IMG/VR virus record: IMGVR_UViG_3300044700_000691
Coordinates: 124,001-188,000 of that record
Length of the DNA: 64,000 nucleotides
Strand: one strand, 5' to 3'
Shown here piece after piece: positions 30,089-63,941 of the stretch; the stretch's first letter is position 1, and every line of letters begins with the position of its first letter. Under the pieces are notes generated by a model. The model ran no database searches. It was not told the DNA's origin and saw nothing but the letters and a program-made list of their open reading frames with translations. Both the position numbers and the translations under genes were made by a program.

Positions 30089-30442
30089 TTATTTTTGTTT
30101 GCTAGCCATCTTAGGATCAACTGACTTAGTGATAGCTGTACCTTTAATAACTAATTTGCCAAATGCTGGATCAACTGACTTAGTGATAGCTTTACCTTTA
30201 GGCGCAGCTTCTGCTAAGTTTTGGTTAACAGACTTAGTGATTTTAGCACCTTTAGCGGCTTTAAGATCAGTCATTTTAGTGTCAACTGATTTTTTAATGC
30301 TAGAACCTTTAGGCATATCTAATTTAGCCATTTTAGGATCAACGCTTTTTCCTAATCTAGAACCTGCAGCAGGCATAGATGCTAAGTTTTGGTTAACTTT
30401 TTCAGTTAGGAATTCTGTGTAAGACAATACTTGGTTTGCCAT
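30089..30442 (-). CDS. Basic Lys/Ala-rich repeat protein; putative DNA-condensing internal protein
   Basis: N-terminal VLSYTEFLTE, then six 17-19-aa KSV(D/N)-type repeats. An exact 24-bp duplicate lies at 30114-30137 and 30168-30191. Confidence 0.8.
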   Translation of the reverse strand: MANQVLSYTEFLTEKVNQNLASMPAAGSRLGKSVDPKMAKLDMPKGSSIKKSVDTKMTDLKAAKGAKITKSVNQNLAEAAPKGKAITKSVDPAFGKLVIKGTAITKSVDPKMASKQK

Positions 30443-32283: not shown

Positions 32284-33630
32284 TTAGTTTTGTGCTCTTC
32301 TTTTTAGAGCGTCGAGGTATGTGTTACCATAGCCTCTTTGATGTTCCGCAACTTTCTCAATCGAGATAAAACCTTCTCTACCTTGGCTTTCGTTGATGTG
32401 TTGCGCATTTTTATTTTGTTTTTCGAAATAAATTCTTTCATTAATTCCTCTTAGATCTCTGCTCTCCCAGAAGTTTTTAACTTGGTAAGGAGTGTTAAGA
32501 ACAGTTAGGGAAGCTTGTGCTTCTAAGCGGCTCTTTTCTGCAGGGGTCATGCTTTCAAAAATATCTTTGAATTTAGTAGGCATGAATTTGATTAAGGTAG
32601 GAACGTTTTCTTGTTGTTTGTTAAGAACTGACTCAATAATTTGGATAACGTCTTCTTCTTTAAAATAAACTGCTCCAGAAAGAGCTTCTATAATAGCAGT
32701 TTTTTGTGTTTGATCTAAATTAAAGAATCTTGATTTATTATCTTCGTTAAGAAGTTTTAGGAATGGATATCTGCTTTCTAATACAGATTTAGCTGAGTTA
32801 TCTTTAATATGCTTAACAATTGCATTTACTGAACCAACTATATCGTTAACTTTAGAACCTTCAGCAACTTGGTAGTTTACTGATTCGTCTAATTTTTCGA
32901 TTTGGCTAAATGCAGAGGCAGATTTGGTAGAAAGACCAGATTTACCGTCATTTAGTGATTCTGCAATATACTCAGAATATTTAATTCCTTTTTCAAGGTT
33001 TTCAGCAAGATAATTAGCGTAACCAACTGAGTGCTTTAAGTTTTCAGCAACGTATTCAGTGTATCTGATACCTTGTTCTGATTTTTCAGCAACATACTCA
33101 GTGTATTGAATTCCTTTATCAAGGTTTTCTGCTAAGTATTCTGTGTACTTAATATTTTTGTTTACGTTTTCTGCGATATGCTCAGAGTAATCAATTGCAT
33201 TATTTAAGTTTTCGCCAACGTATTCAGAGTAACCGATACCTTGTTCAACTTTTTCAGCAAGATAATCCGAGTAATCGATTACCTTATTAACTTTCTCAGC
33301 AACATGCTCAGAATAGTCAATTGATTTGTTTAACATGCCAGAAAGGTAATTGTTATATTCAATTACTTTGCCAAGCTCGCTTGAAAGATAGTTAACGTAC
33401 TCAACTAATTGGTTATTAGTTGCAGGTGTGTTTTCTTCTTCAGCATTTAGATCTGTAACCAAATTCGGATCTTCATCTGTTTGGTCTTCTTCGGTAACTG
33501 CGAAGTTATCAACCATTTTATCTACACTCTCCTTAAGAGAATCAAACTTGCCTTTAACAAGTTCAGAATATTGGTTGAACGCTTCTTTCGTTACAAACTC
33601 ATTAGTCATGTGTTTGTTATTATTTTCCAT
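32284..33630 (-). CDS. Putative nested, in-frame scaffold protein (448 aa, MENNNKH...)
   Basis: In-frame ATG at 33630 lies 20 nt downstream of an internal GATAAATA (33651-33658), with an A-rich leader. Confidence 0.6.
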   Translation of the reverse strand: MENNNKHMTNEFVTKEAFNQYSELVKGKFDSLKESVDKMVDNFAVTEEDQTDEDPNLVTDLNAEEENTPATNNQLVEYVNYLSSELGKVIEYNNYLSGMLNKSIDYSEHVAEKVNKVIDYSDYLAEKVEQGIGYSEYVGENLNNAIDYSEHIAENVNKNIKYTEYLAENLDKGIQYTEYVAEKSEQGIRYTEYVAENLKHSVGYANYLAENLEKGIKYSEYIAESLNDGKSGLSTKSASAFSQIEKLDESVNYQVAEGSKVNDIVGSVNAIVKHIKDNSAKSVLESRYPFLKLLNEDNKSRFFNLDQTQKTAIIEALSGAVYFKEEDVIQIIESVLNKQQENVPTLIKFMPTKFKDIFESMTPAEKSRLEAQASLTVLNTPYQVKNFWESRDLRGINERIYFEKQNKNAQHINESQGREGFISIEKVAEHQRGYGNTYLDALKRRAQN

Positions 33631-34314
33631 AGGTTTTACTATCTCTTCATTATTTATCTTATAAACTTTGATCGATTCTGCGAGGTTTAAGCTTTCAGAA
33701 ATATCTACCAATTTGTTTATAATTGAGCTTGATTTAATATTATCCAAAGATTCGAAAAGCATAGAATAATTGCTTTGGAAACTTTCGTTAACTGATCTTC
33801 TAAGAACTGCTTCGCTAAAACCAGGCTCAGCGACTAAGTCGTATGTGAATATTCTTTGGATTTTTACTTTACCCTCATTTGCTACTTGACCAGCAGCTCT
33901 TGAAGAGGTTGAAATTGTACAGCCTGACTCAACTAGAGTTTTTGCAATCTGACCAGCCGGTGTATTTAGCAGACGTACTTTAATTTTTACGTTATTAGAA
34001 TCTTGATCGTACCATAATTTCTCAATTACGTGAGAAACATTCTTAAGTGAAACATCAAAATTTTGTGGATGATCTAACTCACCAAATAGTTGACCCTTTT
34101 CGATTTTCTCGTTTAGGTATTCTAGGTGTGGAAGATACTCAGCTTTTTCGTAGATTCGGTTGTTGTTATTCTTTGTGTCAAATACTGCACAAACCCCTTC
34201 CATAACAATGTCACCATTCTCTGACTTAACTGTGTTTAGACCTTCATTTACTCTTTCAATAATGAAGAGCATATCTGAGGTATTTGTAATTTCGTTTACG
34301 TCTGTAAGGACCAC
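32284..34314 (-). CDS. gp21: Prohead protease (gp21-like) fused to scaffold/core domain
   Basis: N-terminal ~200 aa: NNNNRIY, GELDHP, VSHVI, LNTPAG, SSRAAG, DLVAEPGF. About 450 aa of coiled-coil and repeat sequence follows. The alternative start is ATG 34272. Confidence 0.9.
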   Translation of the reverse strand: MVLTDVNEITNTSDMLFIIERVNEGLNTVKSENGDIVMEGVCAVFDTKNNNNRIYEKAEYLPHLEYLNEKIEKGQLFGELDHPQNFDVSLKNVSHVIEKLWYDQDSNNVKIKVRLLNTPAGQIAKTLVESGCTISTSSRAAGQVANEGKVKIQRIFTYDLVAEPGFSEAVLRRSVNESFQSNYSMLFESLDNIKSSSIINKLVDISESLNLAESIKVYKINNEEIVKPMENNNKHMTNEFVTKEAFNQYSELVKGKFDSLKESVDKMVDNFAVTEEDQTDEDPNLVTDLNAEEENTPATNNQLVEYVNYLSSELGKVIEYNNYLSGMLNKSIDYSEHVAEKVNKVIDYSDYLAEKVEQGIGYSEYVGENLNNAIDYSEHIAENVNKNIKYTEYLAENLDKGIQYTEYVAEKSEQGIRYTEYVAENLKHSVGYANYLAENLEKGIKYSEYIAESLNDGKSGLSTKSASAFSQIEKLDESVNYQVAEGSKVNDIVGSVNAIVKHIKDNSAKSVLESRYPFLKLLNEDNKSRFFNLDQTQKTAIIEALSGAVYFKEEDVIQIIESVLNKQQENVPTLIKFMPTKFKDIFESMTPAEKSRLEAQASLTVLNTPYQVKNFWESRDLRGINERIYFEKQNKNAQHINESQGREGFISIEKVAEHQRGYGNTYLDALKRRAQN
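32944..33405 (-). repeat. 11 tandem 14-aa (42-bp) coiled-coil repeats in the scaffold
   Basis: VEYVNYLSSELGKV / IEYNNYLSGMLNKS / IDYSEHVAEKVNKV ... IKYSEYIAESLNDG; consensus IxYSEYxAExxxxG. Confidence 0.9.
33651..33658 (-). promoter_or_regulatory. Internal late promoter-like GATAAATA
   Basis: Lies in the protease-scaffold linker at the canonical ~20-nt distance from an in-frame ATG. Confidence 0.6.
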
Positions 34315-34333: not shown

Positions 34334-34341
34334 TATTTATA
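34334..34341 (-). promoter_or_regulatory. T4 late promoter consensus TATAAATA
   Basis: Exact T4 late consensus 19 nt upstream of the protease GTG. Confidence 0.75.
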
Positions 34342-34384: not shown

Positions 34385-35239
34385 CTATATAGTTTTATTT
34401 ATTAAGCGTAGTAGGTCCTGCTTCTCGAGATCAGTTAGTTTATCAAAATTAGGTACCCTTGTATGAATTTTAAAGACATATGCACCTTTATTTTGAAACC
34501 CAGTAGCTAATCCTCGGCCTGGAATGGTTATTTGAATATCGCTAAAGGACTTAGCGCTAAGAGATTTTATCTTAAATTTTGTGCCAGACACAGATTTAAA
34601 GATTAGATTTTCAATATTAATTAACTCGGTTAAGTCTACTTCTCTGTTATCTATAATATTACCGGCTGCATCCATAACAATACCAGATGGTATTACTATT
34701 TCTAATAGGACATATAGATTACCAATAAATGTGCGATTAAACATTGCACCTCCACCAAGTTTACCAGTATTTCCCATATTTTGGAAAGTTAATCTAGAAA
34801 ATGCTCGATTACCATCAAAAATTAATTGGTGTTTGGTTTTGTCTGGGCTAAGCTCTACACTAAAACGATTTGGGGTAGACTCGCCCTTTTTATTATAGAC
34901 TACTTCAATAGTCTTACCAGTTAAAAGGTCTTTAAGATCGATTTTTTGATTAACTACTATATCAAGATCAATACCCCAATTTTGGGTAAAAATATCGGTT
35001 GAGCCAAATCCGCTAAACATGTCACGAAGGTCCTCAAAGTTAGCACCGCCTTTATCGTAACCTTTACGCTTTTCTACATCTCCTAATACACCATAAGCTT
35101 CGGCGATTTCCTTAAATTTGGAATCACCGTCAGGATTTTTATCAGGGTGATATTTAATGGCAAGTTTTCGATATGCCTTTTTAATATCTGCCTGATTGCA
35201 TCCGCGCTCAACTTCTAGTATATTATAATAGTCTTTCAC
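34385..35239 (-). CDS. dnaJ: J-domain chaperone (DnaJ/CbpA-like, no zinc finger)
   Basis: [25 protein letters not shown]-domain; C-terminal GNLYV and IPGRGL..GAYVF. Confidence 0.88.
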
Positions 35240-42752: not shown

Positions 42753-43229
42753 TTACCTAGTCTTTTTGACATCTGCCCAAGATTTACTTGGACCTGCCGC
42801 ATTTACTCTAGCCATTGCCCATTGATGAGCAGTCATTCCTGGTCTGGAACCAGAAGAGTAGAATGCACCTAGACCTTTGGAATATTCTCGTTTTAAATCA
42901 GCAAACGAATAACCCTTTTTAGTAGCAACTGCCCTAATTTTAGCTAGGGTTTCTTTGCTAAGGTTAGAAGATTTTTTCTTATCCGCCTCAGTTACCTTTG
43001 AATCAGGTCTTGGCGTATTTTTCCAACCAGATTTCTTTCGTTCAGCGGCCTCCATCTCATCTCTAAGTTTATATGCAGCATCCTTTTTACCGCTATCTAA
43101 TAAACTCTTCGCTTTATCTAGCTTTTTATCTCTAGAACTTCCTTCTGGGGCTTTATATTGAGCTGGATTTTCAAGAGTCGACTTTTTCTCAAGTAAACTT
43201 ATGTATTCATTAAATGGTTTTACGTACAT
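42753..43229 (-). CDS. Conserved phage hypothetical protein with N-terminal targeting-like motif
   Basis: MYVKPFNEYISLLE at the start. C-terminal GSRPGMTAHQWAMARVN is recalled as DUF5824-like (unverified). Confidence 0.75.
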   Translation of the reverse strand: MYVKPFNEYISLLEKKSTLENPAQYKAPEGSSRDKKLDKAKSLLDSGKKDAAYKLRDEMEAAERKKSGWKNTPRPDSKVTEADKKKSSNLSKETLAKIRAVATKKGYSFADLKREYSKGLGAFYSSGSRPGMTAHQWAMARVNAAGPSKSWADVKKTR

Positions 43230-43232
43230 CGT

Positions 43233-43520
43233 TTATGACTTTTTATTTAGTTGGCGCTTTACCTCGGCTCTAACCTTTTCCATCTTTTTAGCATAGGCTG
43301 GATTATCATTACGATTAAATACAATTTGCTGGTTAAGGCTACCTGTAATTTTTCTCATATCGCCGCCTCTAGTTTTAATTAACCATGAAGCTAAGGCTTT
43401 GATTCCAAGGCTTTTAAATCTACCATTTGCATCAGGGGCATTTGAATCGTGCCAATCTGGTGAGTTTTTGGTTTTTCTTGCCTCTGTAATAAATTCTGTG
43501 TATGTAAGTATATTATTCAT
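43233..43520 (-). CDS. Basic hypothetical protein with N-terminal targeting-like motif (start probably ATG 43520)
   Basis: MNNILTYTEFITE-ARK. Confidence 0.75.
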   Translation of the reverse strand: MNNILTYTEFITEARKTKNSPDWHDSNAPDANGRFKSLGIKALASWLIKTRGGDMRKITGSLNQQIVFNRNDNPAYAKKMEKVRAEVKRQLNKKS

Positions 43521-43524
43521 ATAA

Positions 43525-44052
43525 TTACCAGTACCCCGGATAAGTTTTACCGCCCCAAAGATGAGCATATCGATTTATTCGGCAAGCCCAATATCCAGCT
43601 TTGGTTTTGTCTTTCTTTAGGTGACATTGATGTCTAGCTGCAAATGATGCTCTAGCCTTTGGATTGCTTACCTTTGCGGTAAGGCCTCCATGGATATCGC
43701 CGAATGCAATTTTAATGATTTTGCCAGTTTTTGGATTTTTAACGTAGACATGATACTTTTTAGCACCACCTCGTTTTGGATAGTTTAGGTCAACTTCTCG
43801 ACCTTTATATTCAGCCTCATTAAGTTCTTCAATTGGAAAATCTAGTGGCACTGGCTCCCCTAAATATTCTCCAATAAAACCTAAATCAGTTTTTATGAAT
43901 AATTCCTCTGTAATAGAATCAAATGTAACCCCATTTTCAAAATAAAACCTAGCCTCAGTTAATAACGAAATATGTGCATCACTGCCCGGCCTAAAGGCGG
44001 ATTCGGCAATACATATATTTTCATTTAAATGATACTGTAGATTAGGCGACAT
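43525..44052 (-). CDS. Conserved phage hypothetical protein, basic C-domain with His/Cys cluster
   Basis: LNE-AEYKGREVDL..KKYHVYVKN..FGD..SFAARHQC..GYWAC. Confidence 0.75.
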   Translation of the reverse strand: MSPNLQYHLNENICIAESAFRPGSDAHISLLTEARFYFENGVTFDSITEELFIKTDLGFIGEYLGEPVPLDFPIEELNEAEYKGREVDLNYPKRGGAKKYHVYVKNPKTGKIIKIAFGDIHGGLTAKVSNPKARASFAARHQCHLKKDKTKAGYWACRINRYAHLWGGKTYPGYW

Positions 44053-44412: not shown

Positions 44413-46026
44413 TTACTTTTTATTTAAATTTTTATAAAAGCTAGTAAAGTCTAAAATATTTCTATTAGCTTTTTTAGATTTCTTTGGTTGAAAATTATCA
44501 CCAGAACCTGGTGAAGTTTGAGTTGGCGCAATTGGATTACCCATGCCGCCGATACTTGCTGGTGTTTGCATTGCTACACCTGGTGATGCAACATCCTCTT
44601 TAACTTGACCGGATCCAACTTTAGTTGCTCCTTTAATTTTACTTTGTGGTGCATCTAGTCCGCTTTCTGCACTTGTAAATAAGAAGCGTGTCCACTTTTC
44701 AGCTTTTAATTGAGCCTCTTTACCACCAGTCACCTTGGCAGTTCTTGAAATGGTTCTTCCAATAATAGGTAAAGTTGCTTGTCTAAATCTTGCGAGTTGA
44801 GCTCCAAGATTCTTTTGCTCTTCTCCTTGATATTCGACAGTTGCCGATAGCGTACCAAGATAGGTTCCAATCTTTAGTAGATAATTAATTCGGCTGGAGT
44901 CTAACATTTGTTTAGACGTAATTGCAATTTTAGTTCTTTCAAATAGAGGAAGCTTAATTTCTGGAGAATAGGCAACTCCCTTATAACGACTTATGTCAAG
45001 GTCAGTTTTATATTTTCCAAGACGAGTCCTTGCCTCTAAGTATGCCTCAATTGCCTCAACCATATATTGTTTCTTGGCCGAATCGTCGAGAGTCTGTAAC
45101 ATAGTTCGACGTTTTGTAATAGCATCAATTTCGCCTCGCTCATCCGTCATAATCATAATACGAACTTTTACAAATTGAGACTCTAATGTATTTAGGTCTG
45201 GCCAATTTCTAAGTTCTTCGATTGCATTTCTAATAATAACGTCACGTTTAACTAATTTCTCAGCCTTACCGCCAGTTCGCTTATTAAAATCCTCTGACGA
45301 TTTCTTGAAGTCGTCAACATCATTATCCATTTCCGTTTGAACTTCTTCCCATTCAACATCAATAATATCTGGTTCAGGCTTCTTTTTATCCTCATCTTTA
45401 TTTGAAAAGTCTGAAATAATATAGGCTACCTTTACCGAGTCTTCTGCTGTTTTTCTAAAGTCTTCAGAATCTGCAGTCGTACCATCCATTTTTTCCTTGG
45501 CAGAGCTAACTAATGTTTTAGTAACCTCAGCTTCAGTTTTCTTTTGATCAGTAAATGAAATTTTAATTTTATCAAGCAGGTCATTAACCTCGGCTGTCCA
45601 ATTGCTCTCCTCAATGGTTTGATATGCTTCCCATACAATAGCCATTCGACCTTTGTATGCTCGTATTCTCTCTAACTGTAATTCAATGTCTTCGCCATCT
45701 TTAATCATTTGATCAAGAACTTCGGTTTCAATTTTTAAAGTTTGAGAAATAAAATCAATATACTTATTTAAAATATCAATCCATTCTTTATTAAGAAAAG
45801 CTTGGCTTAATTGCTGAAGAACCTGAGGATCAGTCTTTGCCTTATTTAAAATATCATTTTCGATAAGTCTTGATAAAAACTCATCGACCTTCTTCATGAT
45901 ATCCTCCTCCTTTTTATTGGAGCCTTTGGCAAATGTGATAATATCAGAAATTTCATTTCCAATAATAATTAATTCAGATTCTAATAGAAGCTGTTCGAGG
46001 ATATGTATGTGTTTAAATTTCAGCAT
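44413..46026 (-). CDS. Large helical hypothetical protein; putative internal head protein
   Basis: N-terminal LEQLLLE-S and C-terminal NILDFTSFYKNL; 537 aa. Confidence 0.75.
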   Translation of the reverse strand: MLKFKHIHILEQLLLESELIIIGNEISDIITFAKGSNKKEEDIMKKVDEFLSRLIENDILNKAKTDPQVLQQLSQAFLNKEWIDILNKYIDFISQTLKIETEVLDQMIKDGEDIELQLERIRAYKGRMAIVWEAYQTIEESNWTAEVNDLLDKIKISFTDQKKTEAEVTKTLVSSAKEKMDGTTADSEDFRKTAEDSVKVAYIISDFSNKDEDKKKPEPDIIDVEWEEVQTEMDNDVDDFKKSSEDFNKRTGGKAEKLVKRDVIIRNAIEELRNWPDLNTLESQFVKVRIMIMTDERGEIDAITKRRTMLQTLDDSAKKQYMVEAIEAYLEARTRLGKYKTDLDISRYKGVAYSPEIKLPLFERTKIAITSKQMLDSSRINYLLKIGTYLGTLSATVEYQGEEQKNLGAQLARFRQATLPIIGRTISRTAKVTGGKEAQLKAEKWTRFLFTSAESGLDAPQSKIKGATKVGSGQVKEDVASPGVAMQTPASIGGMGNPIAPTQTSPGSGDNFQPKKSKKANRNILDFTSFYKNLNKK

Positions 46027-46445
46027 TAGTCTAGGGTTAATCTGTATGCAAGTTTATTCTTTAATGATAAAAACTCGTCTCTTACATTGTATAATTCAGT
46101 GTTTGTTTCTTGATCAAATATTTCACAAAAATCTTGTTGAAATACTCTTTCGATATTTTGAATAAAAATTGGCATTGCTTGATCGTAGTCCATAACTAGA
46201 ATTGCGCAGCCTCCAACTTTAAATCTGCCAAATTTACCAATGATCTGTTCAGCAATTTCATCAACTAATCCTAAGAAATCATCATAAAATGCACCAAATG
46301 CATTGTGTTGAGCTTCGTTTGTAGTTTGCCAATGTAAAATATGAGCCTGGTCTCTAATTTGCAGTAGACTTAACATAAATGTAGATACATCCATGGCATC
46401 AGTCTGTGGCTCGTCTAACCCGCTTTGTAATTCAAATGGAATCAT
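46026..46445 (-). CDS. Dps/ferritin-like four-helix protein (start probably ATG 46445)
   Basis: QAHILHWQT..AQHNAFGAFYDDF..LVDEIAEQ matches ferritin-like HxxHW...H...Y...D..AE. The ATG overlaps the upstream stop (ATGA). Confidence 0.7.
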   Translation of the reverse strand: MIPFELQSGLDEPQTDAMDVSTFMLSLLQIRDQAHILHWQTTNEAQHNAFGAFYDDFLGLVDEIAEQIIGKFGRFKVGGCAILVMDYDQAMPIFIQNIERVFQQDFCEIFDQETNTELYNVRDEFLSLKNKLAYRLTLD

Positions 46446-46621
46446 TTCTTTGTAGTATGTTTTTTCCAATCGGCGAATGGTTTAATCCAAAAGGTCCGAT
46501 TAGTTTCCTTTTGTAAAAGATCCATAATCTTATTGTCTCCACTTGGATGCTGCATAACTGCATTTTCCAATCTGGCTTTACCCTGAAGATAAGCTTTGTA
46601 GTTTTTCTGAGAAGAATTCAC
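46442..46621 (-). CDS. Small hypothetical protein, 59 aa (not in the track)
   Basis: GTG 46621 to TGA 46442, 19 nt after a late promoter, with an ATGA overlap into the next gene. Confidence 0.6.
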   Translation of the reverse strand: MNSSQKNYKAYLQGKARLENAVMQHPSGDNKIMDLLQKETNRTFWIKPFADWKKHTTKK

Positions 46622-46663: not shown

Positions 46664-49558
46664 TTATTCTTGAGGAGCAGTTGAGAATGAATCCATGTTA
46701 AGATCTATTCCCAATAGAGAGTCAGATGAAGTAGATTTAGGTCTAATATTATTAGCCTGTTCAATCTTAAAGTATTTAAGCTGATCATCTGTAATCTTTC
46801 CGTTAATTAAAACATAGTCTCCTGTGTGTTTACTAACTGCCATAAAATATGTGCCGTCCTGTAAATATCGATCAAACTCAATCTTTAATACTCCATTTAA
46901 ATAGACACCAGTATTAAATGTACCGTCTTCTGCGATTGCACCGTTAAATACAGCAGTCAACTCATCTTTGTAGTTCTTATAGATTAGGTTGAATCCGGCT
47001 GCTAAAATTTCAACAACCTCTTCTTTAGTTGAAGCTTGAACAGCAGCTGTAATTCCTTGGCTAAAATATTCTTTTCTTGGAGTAGCAGAAGCTGATGGTG
47101 TAAATGCCGTAGAGTTTTCAAAATACTCTGGCACTTCCTGTTTAGCTGCAGTAAATAGATCGGCTAAACCTTTTCTAATATAGTTTCCAGTATCTGCTCC
47201 CATACCAGTACCGCTTTGTCCAGTTAATCTAAAATTATCTCCGCTTGATTTAATTTCAATTAAATCTGTCTTAATTTTAATATCGCCCTTATCTCTATTT
47301 CCAGCGTTTACCGCATCCTTAATTAAGATTGACATTAAAATTTCGCCGCGACCAATGTTTACATTACCAACTGACCCAATTAAATTAAAAAGCTGATCAT
47401 ATAGTGCTGGGCTAAGACCTGTCGTATCAAATAAGGTTTTTAGATTGCCGTTTGGGCTATTTGTAATATCTTCAAATGTAATAGTTGGATTATCTAAATA
47501 CACCAATAGGTCATCGTCTTGATCAAGATCGTCCGCAATTGAAACAATGGTTTTTGCTAAATCTTTATAGCCTTTACCTGTGCCGAGAATATCAAATAAC
47601 TCTTTATTTACGTCGTTATGGGTTCTCTTTAATAGTTTTTCAATCTTTTTATAGAGAGCCTCATTATATGGTGCATCAATAATTAAATCAAGCAGGTCAC
47701 TTTTCTTTTTATCAAGCTCTGCAACTGAAATCGACTCAGTTAAAAGGGATTCTTCAATCTCCTTTGTCATATTATAAAACTCTGAGTGTAGAGGCTTACT
47801 GGTTATGTTTTTATACAAAACAAAATCTTGGTTTTTAACTGAATTAACAAGCTCTGCTTCTAGTTCAATTTTAGGTACTTCTACTACCTTTAACTGAGAT
47901 GGAATTTTTGCGTATGGAGCTCTCTTATTAATACGATTTAGGTCAATTACTAAATCTGGCACAAACTCTAAGTTGGTTGCAATTGCTTTAATTGAATAAC
48001 CTTGGCCAATTGCACCAATTAATTCATCTATTCCAACTGAATCTACAGTTGAACCGCCTACTACATAATCTGAAGTTTTTGATAATCGGTCAATTGAATT
48101 TTTGACTGTTTCCGAAGACATTGGAAAAGCTGAACTTCTTTGTCCAGGGTGATACGCTACCATTAAACAAGGAACATCATACTTTCCTTTAATATTAGCT
48201 GCGATTTTTTCGTGTTCTTTACTTAGAGGTTGAAATTTATCTAGGTAAATAACGATTTCAATATCTTTTTTTTTAGTTTGATTTGCTTGAAATTGACTAA
48301 AAAAATCTGAGGCATCCTCATCTGTACCAAAAAATTGATTAAATGTTGGAAAAAATGCCTCGTTTAATTTATCCTCTGCTGCAAGTTGAACTTTAGCAAT
48401 TTGGGATTTTAGAGTTTCTTTCATAGTTTTATTAAAAAAGGTTGAGCTAACTCTAATATTTTTCTTTCTAAATGTATTTAAGAAAACTCTGTACAATTCC
48501 TTAAGAGTTTTATCTGAATCGATTAATCTAATTACCATATCATCATTGATCAAGACACGATTAACATCAAACTCCGGCTTATTTAGGAATTCTGGAGTTG
48601 TTATTTCAAGACCGCGATATTTGCTACCGTGCTCCTGTATAAAATCTTTAAATATTGCATTTATAATTTGAATATAACGTCTTTCAAATGTTGTACCATC
48701 TGGCTTAATTGCATCAAGGTCTGCTTGTGAATAGGTTTCAATAAAATTCATTAAGTCAGCTGTCATAATCCAAATGTAATCATCAGTCTTTGGTGCAGCT
48801 ACTCTGTCTTGTGCCTTTTCCTTTGCTCTTGCTTGGAAAACCGGGTCAACTAATTTTGCTAAAAATACTGAATCTTCTCCGCCTGGTTCATAGAATCTAA
48901 AAACAATACCTTCGATATCTTTGTCAGCGGTGTCTCTTAAAAAAGAGGTTCTAAGTTCAGGATTAAGAACATTAATAATGTATTTGGTAAAAGATGCAGT
49001 TTTAAATTTTCCAACTAACTCATCAAGCGGAGTATAGACAAAATCTAAAATTTTCTCTTTTTGATCATCTGTTAGTTTTCCTTGAAAAATAATTGGTGGG
49101 CGCTCGATATCTAAAATATCCGCCCATTTGTCTAATTCTGCCTTATCTTGGATAGTCTCAGCCTGTTCGCCAGCTTTATCCAATATATGAATATAACTTA
49201 GGATCAAGTGGTTTTTAGGTAATCTATCGTATTGTATTGATTGAGCAGTCGGTGAACTAAAATACTCCATTCCAAAATGATAGTTACATGGAAGTTTTTC
49301 AATTGAGTCAGCCGATAATTCATCGAAGTGTTTAAGTGCAGGGTTATAGTATGAACTTAGGACACGATCTACACCTGTTAATTTAGTATTACGTTTAAAA
49401 AATTCAAATGGTTCTTCGGAATTTCCACAATTTCTTTGTGCACCAAAAAATGCACCGTCCATTTTTTCGTTAACAATAACTTCTTTATTAAGAAGAGCCT
49501 CTAAAAATTCTTTGCCCTTTTTTTCGTAAATGTCCTTTAAGTGGTTTAGTCCTGCCAT
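46664..49558 (-). CDS. Multidomain protein: Rnl2-like nucleotidyltransferase/ligase + degenerate HxGH NTase + PD-(D/E)xK nuclease-like
   Basis: EKMDG (motif I), FGMEY, IEGIVFR (IV), LAKLVDP (V); YLDKFQPLSKEHEKI; GRGEIL..GDIKI..IEIKS. Confidence 0.7.
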   Translation of the reverse strand: MAGLNHLKDIYEKKGKEFLEALLNKEVIVNEKMDGAFFGAQRNCGNSEEPFEFFKRNTKLTGVDRVLSSYYNPALKHFDELSADSIEKLPCNYHFGMEYFSSPTAQSIQYDRLPKNHLILSYIHILDKAGEQAETIQDKAELDKWADILDIERPPIIFQGKLTDDQKEKILDFVYTPLDELVGKFKTASFTKYIINVLNPELRTSFLRDTADKDIEGIVFRFYEPGGEDSVFLAKLVDPVFQARAKEKAQDRVAAPKTDDYIWIMTADLMNFIETYSQADLDAIKPDGTTFERRYIQIINAIFKDFIQEHGSKYRGLEITTPEFLNKPEFDVNRVLINDDMVIRLIDSDKTLKELYRVFLNTFRKKNIRVSSTFFNKTMKETLKSQIAKVQLAAEDKLNEAFFPTFNQFFGTDEDASDFFSQFQANQTKKKDIEIVIYLDKFQPLSKEHEKIAANIKGKYDVPCLMVAYHPGQRSSAFPMSSETVKNSIDRLSKTSDYVVGGSTVDSVGIDELIGAIGQGYSIKAIATNLEFVPDLVIDLNRINKRAPYAKIPSQLKVVEVPKIELEAELVNSVKNQDFVLYKNITSKPLHSEFYNMTKEIEESLLTESISVAELDKKKSDLLDLIIDAPYNEALYKKIEKLLKRTHNDVNKELFDILGTGKGYKDLAKTIVSIADDLDQDDDLLVYLDNPTITFEDITNSPNGNLKTLFDTTGLSPALYDQLFNLIGSVGNVNIGRGEILMSILIKDAVNAGNRDKGDIKIKTDLIEIKSSGDNFRLTGQSGTGMGADTGNYIRKGLADLFTAAKQEVPEYFENSTAFTPSASATPRKEYFSQGITAAVQASTKEEVVEILAAGFNLIYKNYKDELTAVFNGAIAEDGTFNTGVYLNGVLKIEFDRYLQDGTYFMAVSKHTGDYVLINGKITDDQLKYFKIEQANNIRPKSTSSDSLLGIDLNMDSFSTAPQE

Positions 49559-49573
49559 AAATTTAAATTAGTA

Positions 49574-50074
49574 TTAGTCCAAAGATCCGTATTTTCCTGC
49601 TCCCATATCCTTTGCAAAATCTTTGCCAGCCTTTGAAGAAACGCTAAGGCTAATGCCTTTTAGTAAACCAGCATCCTCTGGGTTCTCTTCAAAATAGGTA
49701 ATTAAGCTAGCTAGGTTAACATTTTGATATGGTTGAATTGTTCCTTCTGGTAGTTTTTTTTCTAATTCTCTACCAGATGAATAGTCTTTCCAGTTAAGAT
49801 TCCAACAATAAAATCTAACTTCTTCTTTCATTTTTGTTGTATAGTAACGGTCAACATCTGCAAGTCTGGCTTGAACTTCAGAAAGATCAGTTTTATATGA
49901 AGTCGAGTGGCCATAGATATCAGCTGGTGTTCCAATGCTTAAACTATCTGATGTAATATCAGTCAATTTAACTAGTTGGTCCATAAGTTCCTGAAATGGT
50001 AATCCTTTAAGTGCCTCAGATTCTTCTGCTTCGTTTAGGAACTGCTTAAAGTTTCCAATAGTGCGTTTTGTCAT
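49574..50074 (-). CDS. Hypothetical protein with N-terminal targeting-like motif
   Basis: MTKRTIGNFKQFLNE-AEE, after a late promoter. Confidence 0.75.
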   Translation of the reverse strand: MTKRTIGNFKQFLNEAEESEALKGLPFQELMDQLVKLTDITSDSLSIGTPADIYGHSTSYKTDLSEVQARLADVDRYYTTKMKEEVRFYCWNLNWKDYSSGRELEKKLPEGTIQPYQNVNLASLITYFEENPEDAGLLKGISLSVSSKAGKDFAKDMGAGKYGSLD

Positions 50075-50095: not shown

Positions 50096-50695
50096 TTATT
50101 TATCCCGAACTAATCTTTGGATTAACTCGCAAAACTCATCAACTGAGTCTTGACTAAAATTATTTGTAAAATGGTCAAAGGAATTACCTTCACGAGCATC
50201 TTTAAATCTAAATGGCGCATCTTCAATCAATTTTAGCATAAGTCGCTTTTCTTCTTTTGCTGAAACTAATCCATCCCATAGGTCTTTTTTGCGAGCCTGA
50301 TCCTGTTTAAATTCATCTGGTGCATCAATCATAATAGTTTTGCAGTTTTGGTAGCCCGGTCTTTTAATTAAGCCATATAGCTCAGATTGAGCTTGACTAA
50401 ATTCCAAGCGATTCCAAATGGTTGCCCAAGTAGCTGCGGTAATATGAGCTCTATCAAATACAAAAATCTTATCGGGAAAATGCTCATGTAGATCAAGTAT
50501 TGTCATAATATTACCCATACTAAAATAGTGAATACCAGAATCAGATTTATCCCATTCTTTAACTATTGCTGAATATTCATCAGCTAGGTAAAATTTATAA
50601 TAAAATAGATTTAATTCATCACCGTGTAGCTTAACCAGTTGATTAAGTAAATGGGTTTTGCCTGAGTGACGGGTACCTTCAATAAAAATTATCAT
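50096..50695 (-). CDS. P-loop nucleoside monophosphate kinase (thymidylate-kinase-like)
   Basis: IIFIEGTRHSGKT Walker A and VFDRAH (the TMPK DR motif). Confidence 0.75.
   Translation of the reverse strand: MIIFIEGTRHSGKTHLLNQLVKLHGDELNLFYYKFYLADEYSAIVKEWDKSDSGIHYFSMGNIMTILDLHEHFPDKIFVFDRAHITAATWATIWNRLEFSQAQSELYGLIKRPGYQNCKTIMIDAPDEFKQDQARKKDLWDGLVSAKEEKRLMLKLIEDAPFRFKDAREGNSFDHFTNNFSQDSVDEFCELIQRLVRDK
50097..50104 (-). promoter_or_regulatory. Late promoter-like GATAAATA
   Basis: 22 nt upstream of ATG 50074. Confidence 0.6.
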
Positions 50696-51222
50696 GAGTA
50701 TTTAAGTTGTATTCTTTCTCTTGATAATATACCAATATTTCCATTAATTTGGAGCAATTCGGTCTTATCAACAAACCAATATTCAATTGATTTTGTAATC
50801 TTACTTAGGTATGGATCTTTAGTGTATTTGTCTATTTGAACTAGAGAATCTTCAAATATTCGGATTTTATCAAAAGACGGCCCGACTGTATCTAAATATT
50901 CAAGTAGCATTTGCGGCTTATCTGTATTACGCTCGCATAGAATAATTTGGTTAAATGTTTTGGTAATTCCAAAATTATCTAAAACTGCCTCCATTGCCTT
51001 TCTGGTTGCAGCTACCCGGTGGCTTAGAATTATTGTAGTGTGATCCTTATCCAGTTTGTTAAAAACCGACTCGATTAGTTGCAATCTATATAGATTGGTA
51101 TTTAGGGATTTTGGATTATCGAACCACTCATATGGTTTTTTGAACTCTGTACCAGCATGGGTAAATGGGGGAACCCTAAATAAGGTTTCATCAAAATCTA
51201 CGACGTTTAAAACTTTCTCCAT
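50692..51222 (-). CDS. HAD-superfamily phosphatase (start probably ATG 51222)
   Basis: VVDFDETLF..P, IILSHR, DK and IRIFEDS; the pattern resembles the RNA-repair-associated HAD family. Confidence 0.75.
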   Translation of the reverse strand: MEKVLNVVDFDETLFRVPPFTHAGTEFKKPYEWFDNPKSLNTNLYRLQLIESVFNKLDKDHTTIILSHRVAATRKAMEAVLDNFGITKTFNQIILCERNTDKPQMLLEYLDTVGPSFDKIRIFEDSLVQIDKYTKDPYLSKITKSIEYWFVDKTELLQINGNIGILSRERIQLKYS

Positions 51223-51226
51223 ATGA

Positions 51227-51234
51227 AATAAATA
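51227..51234 (+). promoter_or_regulatory. Late promoter-like AATAAATA
   Basis: 25 nt before TTG 51260; divergent from and overlapping the opposite promoter region. Confidence 0.4.
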
Positions 51235-51246
51235 ACTTTGAAATAA

Positions 51247-51275
51247 TATTATACTAAAATTGAACTTAGAGTTTA
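51247..51275 (-). promoter_or_regulatory. Putative early/middle promoter TAAAC-N16-GTATAATA
   Basis: Upstream of the HAD-kinase pair. Confidence 0.6.
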
Positions 51276-51721
51276 TAAAAGGGGAGTACGAAGGTAACAG
51301 AGTTAACTTGGTTAGGGAAACTATCCAAAGAAAACAGCCATTTTCCATCTTTACTTTCAGCAACCCAAAGATTTATCGTCAATTTTTAACAGATTTATCC
51401 AAATTTGCAACCTTGCCGTATGTTCGTCAAACATTTATGACAAATCATCAAATGGGAGGCTATCCTATCATCTATCCAAGCATCTTTATAACTAATGTTG
51501 GATCAGCCGTATCTGATCAAGACTTTAAAAATATGATGCTAGGCAGTTTAAAACAGTACCATATCGATTCTATAATTTGTCTCTATGCAGGTCAAATTAG
51601 TTCCTATTATAAAAATGGAGACAGGCACTCCATTGGAACAGATATCTACACTTCACTCAATCCACAAGAATTTGATACATATTATTTTAAGGTTGAGAGT
51701 ACTTGTTACACCTTTGTTTAA
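51260..51721 (+). CDS. Hypothetical protein
   Basis: 153-aa ORF with a TTG start. Confidence 0.65.
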   Translation: MNLEFIKGEYEGNRVNLVRETIQRKQPFSIFTFSNPKIYRQFLTDLSKFATLPYVRQTFMTNHQMGGYPIIYPSIFITNVGSAVSDQDFKNMMLGSLKQYHIDSIICLYAGQISSYYKNGDRHSIGTDIYTSLNPQEFDTYYFKVESTCYTFV

Positions 51722-54560: not shown

Positions 54561-55013
54561 TTATTCTACTCGACCATCATTTCCATCCATTGCATCATGC
54601 ACTGAATTTAAATTGTCCAGGGATGTAGTTAATTGAGAATACATCCAAGACTCTAGTTGCTCGCCTTTAGCCATTCGGTCTTTAATCATATTTGCATAGT
54701 CTGCAATTCTTTCAAGTTGGCCAAATGTCATTTCATTTAATTCAGCTAGGGTATCTCTGCCCTCTGCTTTATTTGTAAATTCTTCAAAAAGAAGTATTGA
54801 AGATTCATTAACTGGTTGGTAAGCTAAGGTTTTGGTTTTTTCTTTAACCGCAGTAGATTTAATTTGTGTAGTTTGACCTTGAGACACCTTAACCGCTAAT
54901 TCTGTAACCTTGTCTCTAATCGCACAAATTTTTTGATAGTCCCGTTTAGTTATCTGAGTCGTTGATTCGTTAATTGTAGACAAATAGGTTAAAAACTGGT
55001 CGATTTGCGACAT
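54561..55013 (-). CDS. Hypothetical protein (start probably ATG 55013)
   Basis: MSQIDQFLTYLSTINE-S and internal ILLFEEFTN. C-terminal QLERIADYA..LESWMYSQLT is a pattern recalled from T4-like head-region proteins. Confidence 0.72.
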   Translation of the reverse strand: MSQIDQFLTYLSTINESTTQITKRDYQKICAIRDKVTELAVKVSQGQTTQIKSTAVKEKTKTLAYQPVNESSILLFEEFTNKAEGRDTLAELNEMTFGQLERIADYANMIKDRMAKGEQLESWMYSQLTTSLDNLNSVHDAMDGNDGRVE

Positions 55014-62597: not shown

Positions 62598-63941
62598 TTA
62601 TTTATCGGAAATATAGTCCGAAAAAGTTTTTATACGGGTTGTGCCAGAACCAGGATTTGCTCCAAGTTCTTGACGACTTGCTTTATATGAACCCCATTGA
62701 GATGGTACGCGAATAGTTCCGGAAACTCGTTGTGGATTTCTTTCCGGTTGCAGGTCATCCATATCTGGATTGCTTTTCGTGCGGTCTCTGAATAACTCTG
62801 GTGTTAGCAGGTCCTCTTCAATCTTTCCACCTAATATCATCCATACCTTTTTAGGGTCCTTTCCTTCAGGGATCCCCTGTGAAAAGCTATCAAAGTCTTG
62901 TGCTAACCAAAACTCTCTCATTAGAGTGCCAGATACGCCATCTTCATCTCCGTCTGCACCAGAGTTTCCTCCAAATTCAGGGCGTTCAGTTTCTATTCTA
63001 TTAATTTTAGAAATTGAGCCTTGCCATTTTTCCATAGCAGCCCATCTGGGCATATCCTCATCTGTAGCATAAAGATTAACTACCGTATTTGGTGCATATT
63101 GTGTTTGGCCAAGAGCTTCAACAAATTCATATCCACTTCTGACTGGAGTAACGTTTGATAGGTGCAATTCAACATTATCAAAGTCTTCTAAATAGTAATC
63201 TAATACATCCATTGCAGATTTGCCGCTAATTCCAGCCATTTCTGTCTTGGAAATAAACACATGTACCTCGTCGTTTTCTTCTGCAATTTTTGCAATTGCA
63301 TCATAGTGACCGGCATGTGGTGGTTTAAATTTACCACTAAATATTCCGACGGTTTTAATATTTAATTTTGGAACTTGAGTACGACCAATTTTTCTGGTCT
63401 TCATTGTAATTTCTGCAAACTCAGTCTCTAGACTCTTTGCAAGTGCTAGGTTTTTGCGATCATCATCATAAAAAGTAAAATGAGTAAAGCCTTTTGCCAT
63501 TAGTTTACGAAAGGCTTCTTTTTTCTTTTCTGCAATAGTGCCGTCGAATCCAAATTCTGGATCACTTACTGCATAAATTAGGTTGGGGTGAATATCTATA
63601 CCGTGGGATAATAGAAATTCTCTGACTAGTTTCTTATTATCTCTAGCTGTAATAATCCCGACAGCAGTCCCGGATTCGTATGCAGAACGTAATATGTTAA
63701 GTACCCATTCAACTAATCTTCCAGCCTTTAAAATATTAGCATCATTGAATTGGGTATAGTTAACCTCATGATGAGGTTCCTTTTCATAATCGTTAAACTC
63801 CTGTGGAGTAAGATCAAATTTCTCGCCAGTCAAGGCATCCTTAACAAGGATCTTTGCATTGGTAACAACTAGCGTGTCATCCAAATCAAATACGATAATT
63901 GAATTGTCTCTAGAAAATGCCATTTCGTTTACTGTTTGCAC
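62598..63941 (-). CDS. HAD phosphatase fused to HxGH nucleotidyltransferase (cytidylyltransferase/NMNAT-like fold)
   Basis: IVFDLDDTL..IITAR..KK..FYDDD, then IFSGKFKPPHAGH..SGTLMR; C-terminal RIKTFSDYISDK. Confidence 0.8.
   Translation of the reverse strand: MQTVNEMAFSRDNSIIVFDLDDTLVVTNAKILVKDALTGEKFDLTPQEFNDYEKEPHHEVNYTQFNDANILKAGRLVEWVLNILRSAYESGTAVGIITARDNKKLVREFLLSHGIDIHPNLIYAVSDPEFGFDGTIAEKKKEAFRKLMAKGFTHFTFYDDDRKNLALAKSLETEFAEITMKTRKIGRTQVPKLNIKTVGIFSGKFKPPHAGHYDAIAKIAEENDEVHVFISKTEMAGISGKSAMDVLDYYLEDFDNVELHLSNVTPVRSGYEFVEALGQTQYAPNTVVNLYATDEDMPRWAAMEKWQGSISKINRIETERPEFGGNSGADGDEDGVSGTLMREFWLAQDFDSFSQGIPEGKDPKKVWMILGGKIEEDLLTPELFRDRTKSNPDMDDLQPERNPQRVSGTIRVPSQWGSYKASRQELGANPGSGTTRIKTFSDYISDK
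62599..62606 (-). promoter_or_regulatory. Late promoter-like GATAAATA
   Basis: 20 nt upstream of ATG 62578. Confidence 0.6.

Follow-up and report, generated by a model that had tools for sequence, protein, structure and literature searches.

We analyzed a stretch of 64,000 nucleotides (positions 124,001 to 188,000 of the IMG/VR virus record IMGVR_UViG_3300044700_000691, hereafter the window), in which one open reading frame (ORF) on the minus strand, here named P0001, encodes a 964-residue protein predicted to join a ligase of the Rnl2 type to a nucleotidyltransferase-like and a nuclease-like domain. The viral record containing the window is a single contig of 216,815 bp with an estimated completeness of about 84%, and the phage originates from freshwater lakes. 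It is a T4-like jumbo phage, whose capsid protein matches the gp23 type and is nearest to those of Lak and other huge phages (33-40% identity), and whose genome also encodes a gp21-type head protease, a tail sheath, UvsX, UvsW, a DnaB-type helicase, SbcCD and a ribonucleotide reductase.

Domain layout and motif states of P0001

The ORF that the initial annotation had described at this locus is present as described, and it is a real gene because its homologues span identities of 99% to about 27% (417 clusters at 50% identity, E <= 1e-3), because the ratio of nonsynonymous to synonymous substitution rates (dN/dS), computed against five relatives, stays within 0.02-0.18 in each segment (with dS near saturation), and because contigs of four metatranscriptome libraries, in which DNA carry-over is possible, span the gene and its junction to the upstream gene. 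Six of the seven features in that annotation lie at the places given for them, the exception being a late promoter. The domains, the linkers and the genes of interest around P0001 are listed in Table 1.

Table 1. Features of the P0001 locus and genes with targeting-peptide-like N-termini. Positions refer to the window, except those prefixed C1, which are genome coordinates. A slash after E marks a putative cleavage site; pLDDT, predicted local distance difference test; AF2, AlphaFold 2.
Feature	Residues or length	Position (nt)	Strand	Details
Whole ligase-fusion ORF (P0001)	964 aa + stop	46664..49558	minus	
Predicted ligase adenylyltransferase domain	1-238	48845..49558	minus	Pfam PF09414, Foldseek, motif conservation
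Predicted all-helical domain, position as Rnl2 C-domain	239-397	48368..48844	minus	AF2 model helices 239-394
Disordered linker 1	398-430	48269..48367	minus	L-N-E400/A-F-F-P-T-F-N-Q-F-F (nt 48329-48367) and acidic stretch; pLDDT < 50
NMNAT-fold (HIGH-superfamily) nucleotidyltransferase-like domain	431-605	47744..48268	minus	
Linker 2	606-640	47639..47743	minus	tandem I-E-E/S, L-T-E608/S at 601-609 (nt 47732-47758); pLDDT < 50 at 607-642
Helical subdomain and PD-(D/E)xK-like core	641-918	46805..47638	minus	catalytic candidates E739, D759, E768, K770 (nt 47249-47344)
Conserved C-terminal tail and stop	919-964	46664..46804	minus	
166-aa gene	166 aa	49574..50074	minus	T4-type capsid-targeting-like N-terminus, MTKRTIGNFKQFLNE/A
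P-loop kinase	199 aa	50096..50695	minus	GTRHSGKT
HAD phosphatase	176 aa	50692..51222	minus	DFDET motif; first gene of minus-strand operon
Targeting-peptide bearers, window		49574-50074, 43233-43568, 30089-30442, 54561-55013, 42753-43229, 44413-46026	minus (all)	
Targeting-peptide bearers, genome		C1: 43859-46426(-), 41150-41632(-), 11533-11958(+), 18379-18936(+), 22754-23389(+), 24704-25555(+)	as given	

In the N-terminal part, the previously noted ligase motifs I, III, IV and V follow one another in order as NEK32MDG (I; K32 at nt 49463-49465), FGME98Y (III), E216GIVFR (IV) and LAK235LVDP (V), and the residues K32, E98, E216 and K235 vary little or not at all across 60 homologues. Their spacing resembles that of T4 RnlB (K35/E99/E204/K227). 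The Pfam model RNA_ligase (PF09414) covers residues 25-235 with E 2.8e-7, its 31.3 bits lying barely above the cut-off of 27. The resemblance to Rnl2-type RNA ligases proposed earlier was also borne out by a Foldseek search with the full-length AlphaFold model (pLDDT 75), in which T4 Rnl2 (2hvr) came first (E 1.2e-6), followed by 1s68, T. brucei REL1 (1xdn) and Naegleria NgrRnl (Rnl5). The alignment to full-length 2hvr comprises 364 columns with a root-mean-square deviation of 21.8 A and a TM score of 0.39, values that describe the whole alignment and not the helical domain alone; the latter is kept in the stand-alone ligase forms of about 400 residues. P0001 has in common with T4 RnlB (gp24.1; PDB 2HVR, 1S68) and the Rnl2 family, including REL1, an N-terminal adenylyltransferase domain, in P0001 followed by what is predicted to be a helical domain, as well as the order and spacing of the motifs, and it differs from T4 Rnl2 in carrying about 560 extra residues, which make up two further domains.

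The first of these, the middle domain, shows the Rossmann-like fold of the HIGH-superfamily nucleotidyltransferases. The reported decay of its HxGH motif was confirmed: in KFQPLSKEH (residues 441-449), S446-K-E-H449 (nt 48212-48223) takes the place of HxGH, and S-K/Q-E-H is found only in the clade of the window protein (at least 71% identity), whereas all 56 other aligned homologues have HxGH or NNGH. The second nucleotide-binding motif (ISxTxxR type) is gone as well, and EVPKIELEAELV is found where distant relatives read TPRxxSATEVR. The loss is stepwise, since distant relatives have both GRFQPFHxGH and TPRxxSATEVR, a middle clade has kept HxGH and lost the second motif, and the window clade has lost both; both signature motifs of archaeal-type NMN adenylyltransferase (PDB 1HYB, 1F9A), NadD, PPAT and NadM are absent from the window protein (SKEH; no S-x-T-x-x-R). 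Because purifying selection continues on the middle domain (dN/dS 0.04-0.10), its sequence marks it as a pseudo-enzyme still in use and not as debris. The relatives with intact motifs match a generic HIGH-family model and no specific equivalog in NCBIfam.

The intact motif with which the decayed one had been compared, KFKPPHAGH, is present in the gene at 62598-63941 (minus strand), a 447-aa fusion of an N-terminal half resembling HAD proteins or polynucleotide kinase-phosphatases and a HIGH-family nucleotidyltransferase; a specific kinship between this gene and the middle domain of P0001 was not supported (BLASTP E 1.7). In two family members found elsewhere, P0118 and P0120, HxGH reads NNGH and TENLDG replaces NEKMDG, with loss of the ligase nucleophile, and the ligase part, too, can thus turn into a pseudo-enzyme within the family.

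In the C-terminal part, the proposed PD-(D/E)xK-like signature GE...GD...IEIK withstood comparison: G736, G738, E739, D759, E768 and K770 are the sole invariant columns in an alignment of 42 sequences, which reaches 14-20% identity. A model of this domain (pLDDT 88, predicted TM score 0.80) places E739 at the start of a helix, D759 before a strand and E768-x-K770 in the next strand, the canonical order of PD-(D/E)xK enzymes. The top structural matches outside the family are all type II restriction enzymes, and the modelled domain resembles the monomeric enzymes HhaI, HinP1I and MspI in having E...D...ExK on a helix-strand-strand-strand core. By sequence, no relative was found in Pfam (searched with the 42 C-terminal domains), PHROGs, NCBIfam or PDB, and when a large protein collection was searched with a profile of the nuclease alignment, the matches were mainly fragments of close relatives. 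Motif pattern and model together indicate that the C-terminal domain is probably a restriction-fold nuclease. It is quite improbable that it is a nucleic-acid- or protein-binding module that mimics the PD-(D/E)xK signature, given that the only residues invariant at such low identity are the motif acids, the lysine and the flanking glycines, as would be expected of a catalytic site. The tail that follows has low pLDDT in the full-length model and is partly beta-stranded in the domain model, with dN/dS 0.04-0.10.

Distribution of the family and position of the gene in the genome

Members of the family occur in three sizes, of about 400 residues (ligase only), about 640 residues (ligase and nucleotidyltransferase) and about 1000 residues. 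The nuclease-like domain is fused in 9 of the 27 long cluster representatives, and in one protein, P0190, it is joined straight to the ligase with no nucleotidyltransferase domain between them. At two loci, L001 and L059, the domain is encoded on its own, by a gene starting at the stop codon of the ligase gene (hhalign probability 100%, E 1e-42). Other long members bear different orphan extensions, and Pfam detected neither a nuclease family nor any other extra domain in 29 long relatives. In the source annotations the homologues are named hypothetical, cytidyltransferase-like or NMNAT. Whole P0001 gave no match in PHROGs and NCBIfam, and phmmer and profile searches of the PDB sequences returned nothing relevant. 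Against phage records, megablast found no match and tblastn found six records of uncultured huge phages, matching in the ligase part only; no cultured phage in the phage collection searched carries the family.

The predicted three-domain layout of ligase, HxGH-fold domain and PD-(D/E)xK-like domain therefore holds, as far as sequence and structural models can tell. The statement that this architecture had not been described also stands, as no curated family or publication with it was found in the literature searched, the scope of which did not take in the RNA-repair review of Burroughs and Aravind (2016). Each part is of a kind seen before, and the novelty lies in the way they are combined, in the orphan nuclease family and in the step-by-step inactivation of the nucleotidyltransferase. 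A precedent is the fusion of Rnl2 with an HNH nuclease in jumbo phages (Iyer et al. 2021, PMC7824862), which likewise unites in a single polypeptide a ligase of the Rnl2 type and a metal-dependent nuclease. There the HNH nuclease is N-terminal, whereas the nuclease-like domain of P0001 is C-terminal and of the PD-(D/E)xK type, with an NMNAT-fold domain in between. Polyvalent proteins combine many effector domains with hallmark modules and are encoded with packaging genes, and the 2H domains treated in the same study have no reported association with RNA ligases (Iyer et al. 2017, PMC5512222); none of the hallmark domains (MuF, portal fusion, ART, MPTase peptidase and others) was detected in P0001 with Pfam, PHROGs and NCBIfam.

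P0001 lies in a minus-strand cluster that begins at about 51,260, divergent from UvsW, and runs in the order HAD phosphatase, P-loop kinase, 166-aa gene, ligase, 59-aa gene, DUF5856 gene, small genes, baseplate genes, protease and capsid gene. No more than about 4 kb separates uvsW from the ligase in any of the 82 loci compared (80 viral-contig loci together with L001 and L002), and in T4 the order is uvsW, inh, hoc, 24.3, 24.2, rnlB, followed by the head genes 24 and 23. Since the proximity to uvsW in these 82 loci matches the T4 order, the P0001 gene is the positional counterpart of T4 rnlB. The 166-aa gene is found directly upstream of the ligase in relatives as well, with an invariant E15. 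Downstream, the 59-aa gene (46442-46621, minus) and the DUF5856 gene (46026-46469, minus; phrog_858, 'starvation-inducible transcriptional regulator') stay in place in relatives whose ligase domains are 54-64% identical. Pfam gave no assignments to the conserved neighbours at distant loci, all of which are orphans.

The late promoter that had been placed upstream of P0001 was not found: the octamer TATAAATA does not occur on the minus strand between 46664 and 51400, and in the window its three exact copies are fewer than chance would give (9.5 expected), while its 212 one-mismatch copies (211 expected) are at chance level. The only exact minus-strand copy of this T4 late-promoter octamer in the window lies at 34334-34341, just upstream of the head-protease gene. 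Sigma-70-like promoter matches occur at chance frequency. For the HAD gene, the likely start is the ATG at 51222 and not the TTG at 51363 of the listed ORF (50692-51363); a TATAAT-like box precedes this ATG, in the divergent region common to the UvsW-side genes.

Proposed function and alternative readings

We interpret P0001, with somewhat better than even confidence, as a functional enzyme of several domains that works on the ends of nucleic acids in the cytoplasm and has as its base an ATP-dependent ligase of the Rnl2 type in the position of T4 rnlB. By the chemistry of the family, K32 would take AMP from ATP and transfer it to a 5'-phosphate end, and attack by a 3'-OH would then seal a nick in duplex RNA or in an RNA:DNA hybrid, with the helical domain helping to hold the duplex. 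The PD-(D/E)xK-like domain, in which the metal-binding signature (E739, D759, E768, K770) is complete, would make or trim breaks and would most likely leave 5'-phosphate and 3'-OH ends. Because such ends can be sealed without prior healing, the nuclease and the ligase would match in their chemistry, the one breaking and the other sealing. Ancestral members probably had an active middle domain, which in the window clade may serve as a non-catalytic spacer or a binding module. The fused, directly joined and adjacent arrangements described above link ligase and nuclease, whose substrates and activity we infer; the two parts may act on one substrate, to be cut and resealed, or on different substrates, one attacked and the other repaired.

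It is important to mention that several observations weigh against this interpretation. The curated Rnl2 model TIGR02307 does not match P0001 (NCBIfam, E <= 0.05), similarity to T4 RnlB is undetectable in pairwise comparison and reaches an hhalign probability of 0.1% with the family profile, and motif V contains one lysine instead of the K-x-K of Rnl2. For these reasons we call the ligase Rnl2-type by its predicted architecture and fold, and not a proven member of the Rnl2 family. Moreover, most loci with the ligase-nucleotidyltransferase pair have no nuclease-like gene within 7 kb, so that the nuclease would be an accessory and not a core partner. Finally, the conserved protease-type sites of P0001 and the neighbouring gene with a targeting peptide make delivery in the virion possible.

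Other ligases of the genome delimit the role of P0001. A separate gene encodes an ATP-dependent DNA ligase, and the possibility that P0001 is the replicative ligase was rejected on that ground. Additionally, outside the window, at C1:209447-211040 (L004:1447-3040, minus strand), a gene for an Rnl5-type ligase (OB and RNA_ligase domains; TIGR02306, E 1e-28) overlaps a gene for an AAA_33 kinase, and six tRNA genes are clustered around this pair (C1:201767-216566). The two genes likely form a tRNA-repair module, more orthodox than P0001; the ligase part of P0001 and this other RNA ligase are unrelated at the level of BLASTP. With these two ligases also encoded by the phage, P0001 would be a third, specialised one, and the suggestion in the initial annotation that it may counter host defences that cleave tRNA or RNA is weakened, as regards anticodon nucleases, by the presence of the Rnl5-type pair among the tRNA genes. 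ARAGORN also called a tmRNA at C1:63997-64463, with an odd tag peptide, a call that may be a false positive.

A possible but improbable alternative is that P0001 belongs to an RNA or tRNA repair pathway directed against the damage of host ribonucleases, in which the HAD protein and the kinase would heal 2',3'-cyclic-phosphate and 5'-OH ends and the ligase would seal them. The order of the operon (HAD, kinase, 166-aa gene, ligase), with an overlap of 4 nt between the HAD and kinase genes, agrees with such a pathway, as does the fact that the kinase gene stays beside the ligase gene down to about 44% ligase identity. The HAD protein has no Pfam or NCBIfam match; its nearest look-alikes are in PF10307 HAD_SAK_1 (0.95), the 'Swiss Army Knife RNA repair' family of HAD proteins, which a survey of jumbo phages ties to RNA ligases (PMC7824862). 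It is, however, almost equally like the T5 dNMPase (0.93), and the kinase resembles thymidylate or deoxynucleoside kinases (Thymidylate_kin, dNK and AAA_28 types; the homologue at L033 matches PF02223 weakly, E 2.6e-5), for which reason the genomic context does not settle the question of RNA repair. Both proteins fall below every curated cut-off and both are missing from the distant clade, the Rnl5-type ligase and AAA_33 kinase are the better candidates for tRNA repair, and a metal-dependent nuclease has no obvious part in such a pathway.

Bacterial Pnkp with Hen1, T4 Pnk with Rnl1 and the kinetoplastid editosome combine, as P0001 does, end processing with a ligase of the same superfamily, and in the editosome a cycle of cutting, modifying and sealing is carried out by an endonuclease together with a nucleotidyltransferase and a ligase of the Rnl2 type. 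Unlike these systems, P0001 has no kinase or phosphatase domain, and its nucleotidyltransferase domain is of the HIGH type, not the Pol-beta type, and appears inactive.

We consider it unlikely that the two enzymatic parts serve attack and repair on different targets, with the nuclease degrading the DNA of the host or of competitors, the ligase mending RNA of the phage or the host, and the fusion ensuring no more than co-expression. The HNH-Rnl2 proteins of jumbo phages were interpreted in this manner (PMC7824862), the nearest folds of the C-terminal domain are restriction enzymes of DNA, and the module is gained and lost among relatives like an accessory weapon. On the other hand, no gene for a methyltransferase or for other self-protection lies nearby. 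Furthermore, the nuclease is always fused to the ligase family or encoded immediately downstream of it, with no copy found elsewhere in the genome, which argues for a functional link between the two.

Protease-type sites, targeting peptides and the question of packaging

The two disordered linkers of P0001 bear on whether the protein could be packaged. The tag-like FPTFNQFF was located at residues 403-410 (nt 48329-48352) and is conserved in the family, F406 being invariant and E400 and F409 present in at least 90% of the members. In the stand-alone ligases a motif of this type is found near the C-terminus, after an NES-like site, a position that would fit a removable tag and a docking peptide alike. 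The gp21-type site ESLLTE-S is likewise present, at residues 603-609 (nt 47732-47752), but its presence alone has no meaning, because P0001 contains 10 [LI]xE sites against 11.7 +/- 3 in shuffled sequences. Among the non-catalytic [LIVM]xE sites of the family, however, none is better conserved than E400 (59 of 60 sequences) and E608 (46 of 55), each of which lies in a linker of low pLDDT and precedes a small residue; accessible sites of the [LI]xE-small type are common by chance in any protein. Such sites in exposed segments are also found in the T4 internal proteins, Alt and other gp21 substrates.

Targeting peptides of the T4 type are abundant in this phage. According to the T4 record, gp23 is cleaved at FLTE/A, and IPII and IPIII begin with MKTYQEFIAE/A. 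The pattern [FY].[QED][FYW][LIVM].E[SAG] occurs 12 times genome-wide against 0.27 expected, 10 of the occurrences being at N-termini; MKIKRFNQFINE/S is one example, and another is the near-perfect T4-type peptide MTKRTIGNFKQFLNE/A with which the product of the 166-aa gene next to the ligase begins. The resulting capsid-targeting-like consensus, M-x-K-x-x-F-x-Q-F-[IL]-N-E/[SA], is found in about a dozen proteins, among them an 855-aa protein and a NUDIX hydrolase, and the same N-termini occur at the loci of relatives. These N-termini (MK..F.QF[IL]NE/[SA]) are very like that of the T4 internal proteins, whereas P0001 itself has no N-terminal peptide. The sequences suggest that the phage probably packages many proteins. 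Its capsid protein has a SINE/A site. The head-protease gene (32284-34314, minus) encodes a C-terminal extension with about 10 tandem Y-x-E-Y-[LIV]-A-E-[NSK] repeats at residues ~330-440, which resemble protease sites repeated within a fused scaffold domain, and VNE/S and INE/S flank the protease and the C-terminus. Directly upstream of this gene, the product of 34385-35239 (minus) has a J-domain-like N-terminus, which suggests a DnaJ-like co-chaperone; PHROGs matched it to families of unknown function only.

These observations could be taken to mean that P0001 belongs to a family of Rnl2-type ligases with an internal (in the short forms C-terminal) capsid-targeting-like motif and prohead-protease sites. 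P0001 would then enter the prohead, a T4-type protease would cut both linkers into ligase, pseudo-nucleotidyltransferase and nuclease, and the products would be injected as a break-and-seal kit that acts before the expression of phage genes. The conservation of E400 and E608 in both linkers, with A, S, G or N as the next residue, would be explained in this way, and the cleavage precedents in T4, the SINE/A site and scaffold repeats of the phage itself, the excess of targeting-peptide patterns with one of them in the adjacent gene, and the continuation of the same-strand cluster into baseplate and head genes are all in agreement with it. Additionally, the F-N-Q-F of linker 1 resembles the core of the targeting peptides, and in the stand-alone ligases it would form a tail behind the NES-like site.

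We nevertheless hold both the family-wide motif assignment and the packaging of P0001 to be doubtful. No capsid-targeting sequence was found at the N-terminus of P0001, residues 1-25 being nearly invariant and part of the ligase fold. With a matrix made from the targeting peptides of the phage itself, the best linker windows of P0001 rank about 190-220 of 64,401, with no full match, and the motif of linker 1 contains both elements with the site before the core, the reverse of the targeting peptides. This site-then-core pattern is not clearly enriched genome-wide (7 occurrences against 2.1 expected, 3 of the 7 being the scaffold repeats). The conserved aromatic residues after E400 would be unnecessary for cleavage and better fit a docking motif. 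T4 Rnl2 is not known to be part of the virion. A role of FPTFxxF as a binder of the sliding clamp was dropped, as Pfam detected no gp45-type clamp in the genome, which is 84% complete. Packaging of P0001, if true, would be a first for an RNA ligase and would suggest a physiological role for the Rnl2-type enzymes; the abundance of T4-style targeting peptides makes this idea accessible to metaproteomics even though the phage is uncultured.

For the end-processing enzyme that we favour, the significance lies in what accompanies the ligase. We know of no clear physiological role for T4 RNA ligase 2 since the description of the enzyme. In many aquatic T4-like and jumbo phages, its positional counterpart is tied to an NMNAT-fold nucleotidyltransferase-like domain and to a probable restriction-fold nuclease, either fused or adjacent. 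The nuclease-like domain constitutes an orphan family, without a relative by sequence in Pfam, PHROGs or PDB, and the clade-specific, stepwise loss of nucleotidyltransferase motifs under purifying selection offers a clean natural case of the conversion of an enzyme domain into a pseudo-enzyme. These associations supply testable hypotheses on what Rnl2-type ligases act on, and they may hint at the natural role of T4 Rnl2.

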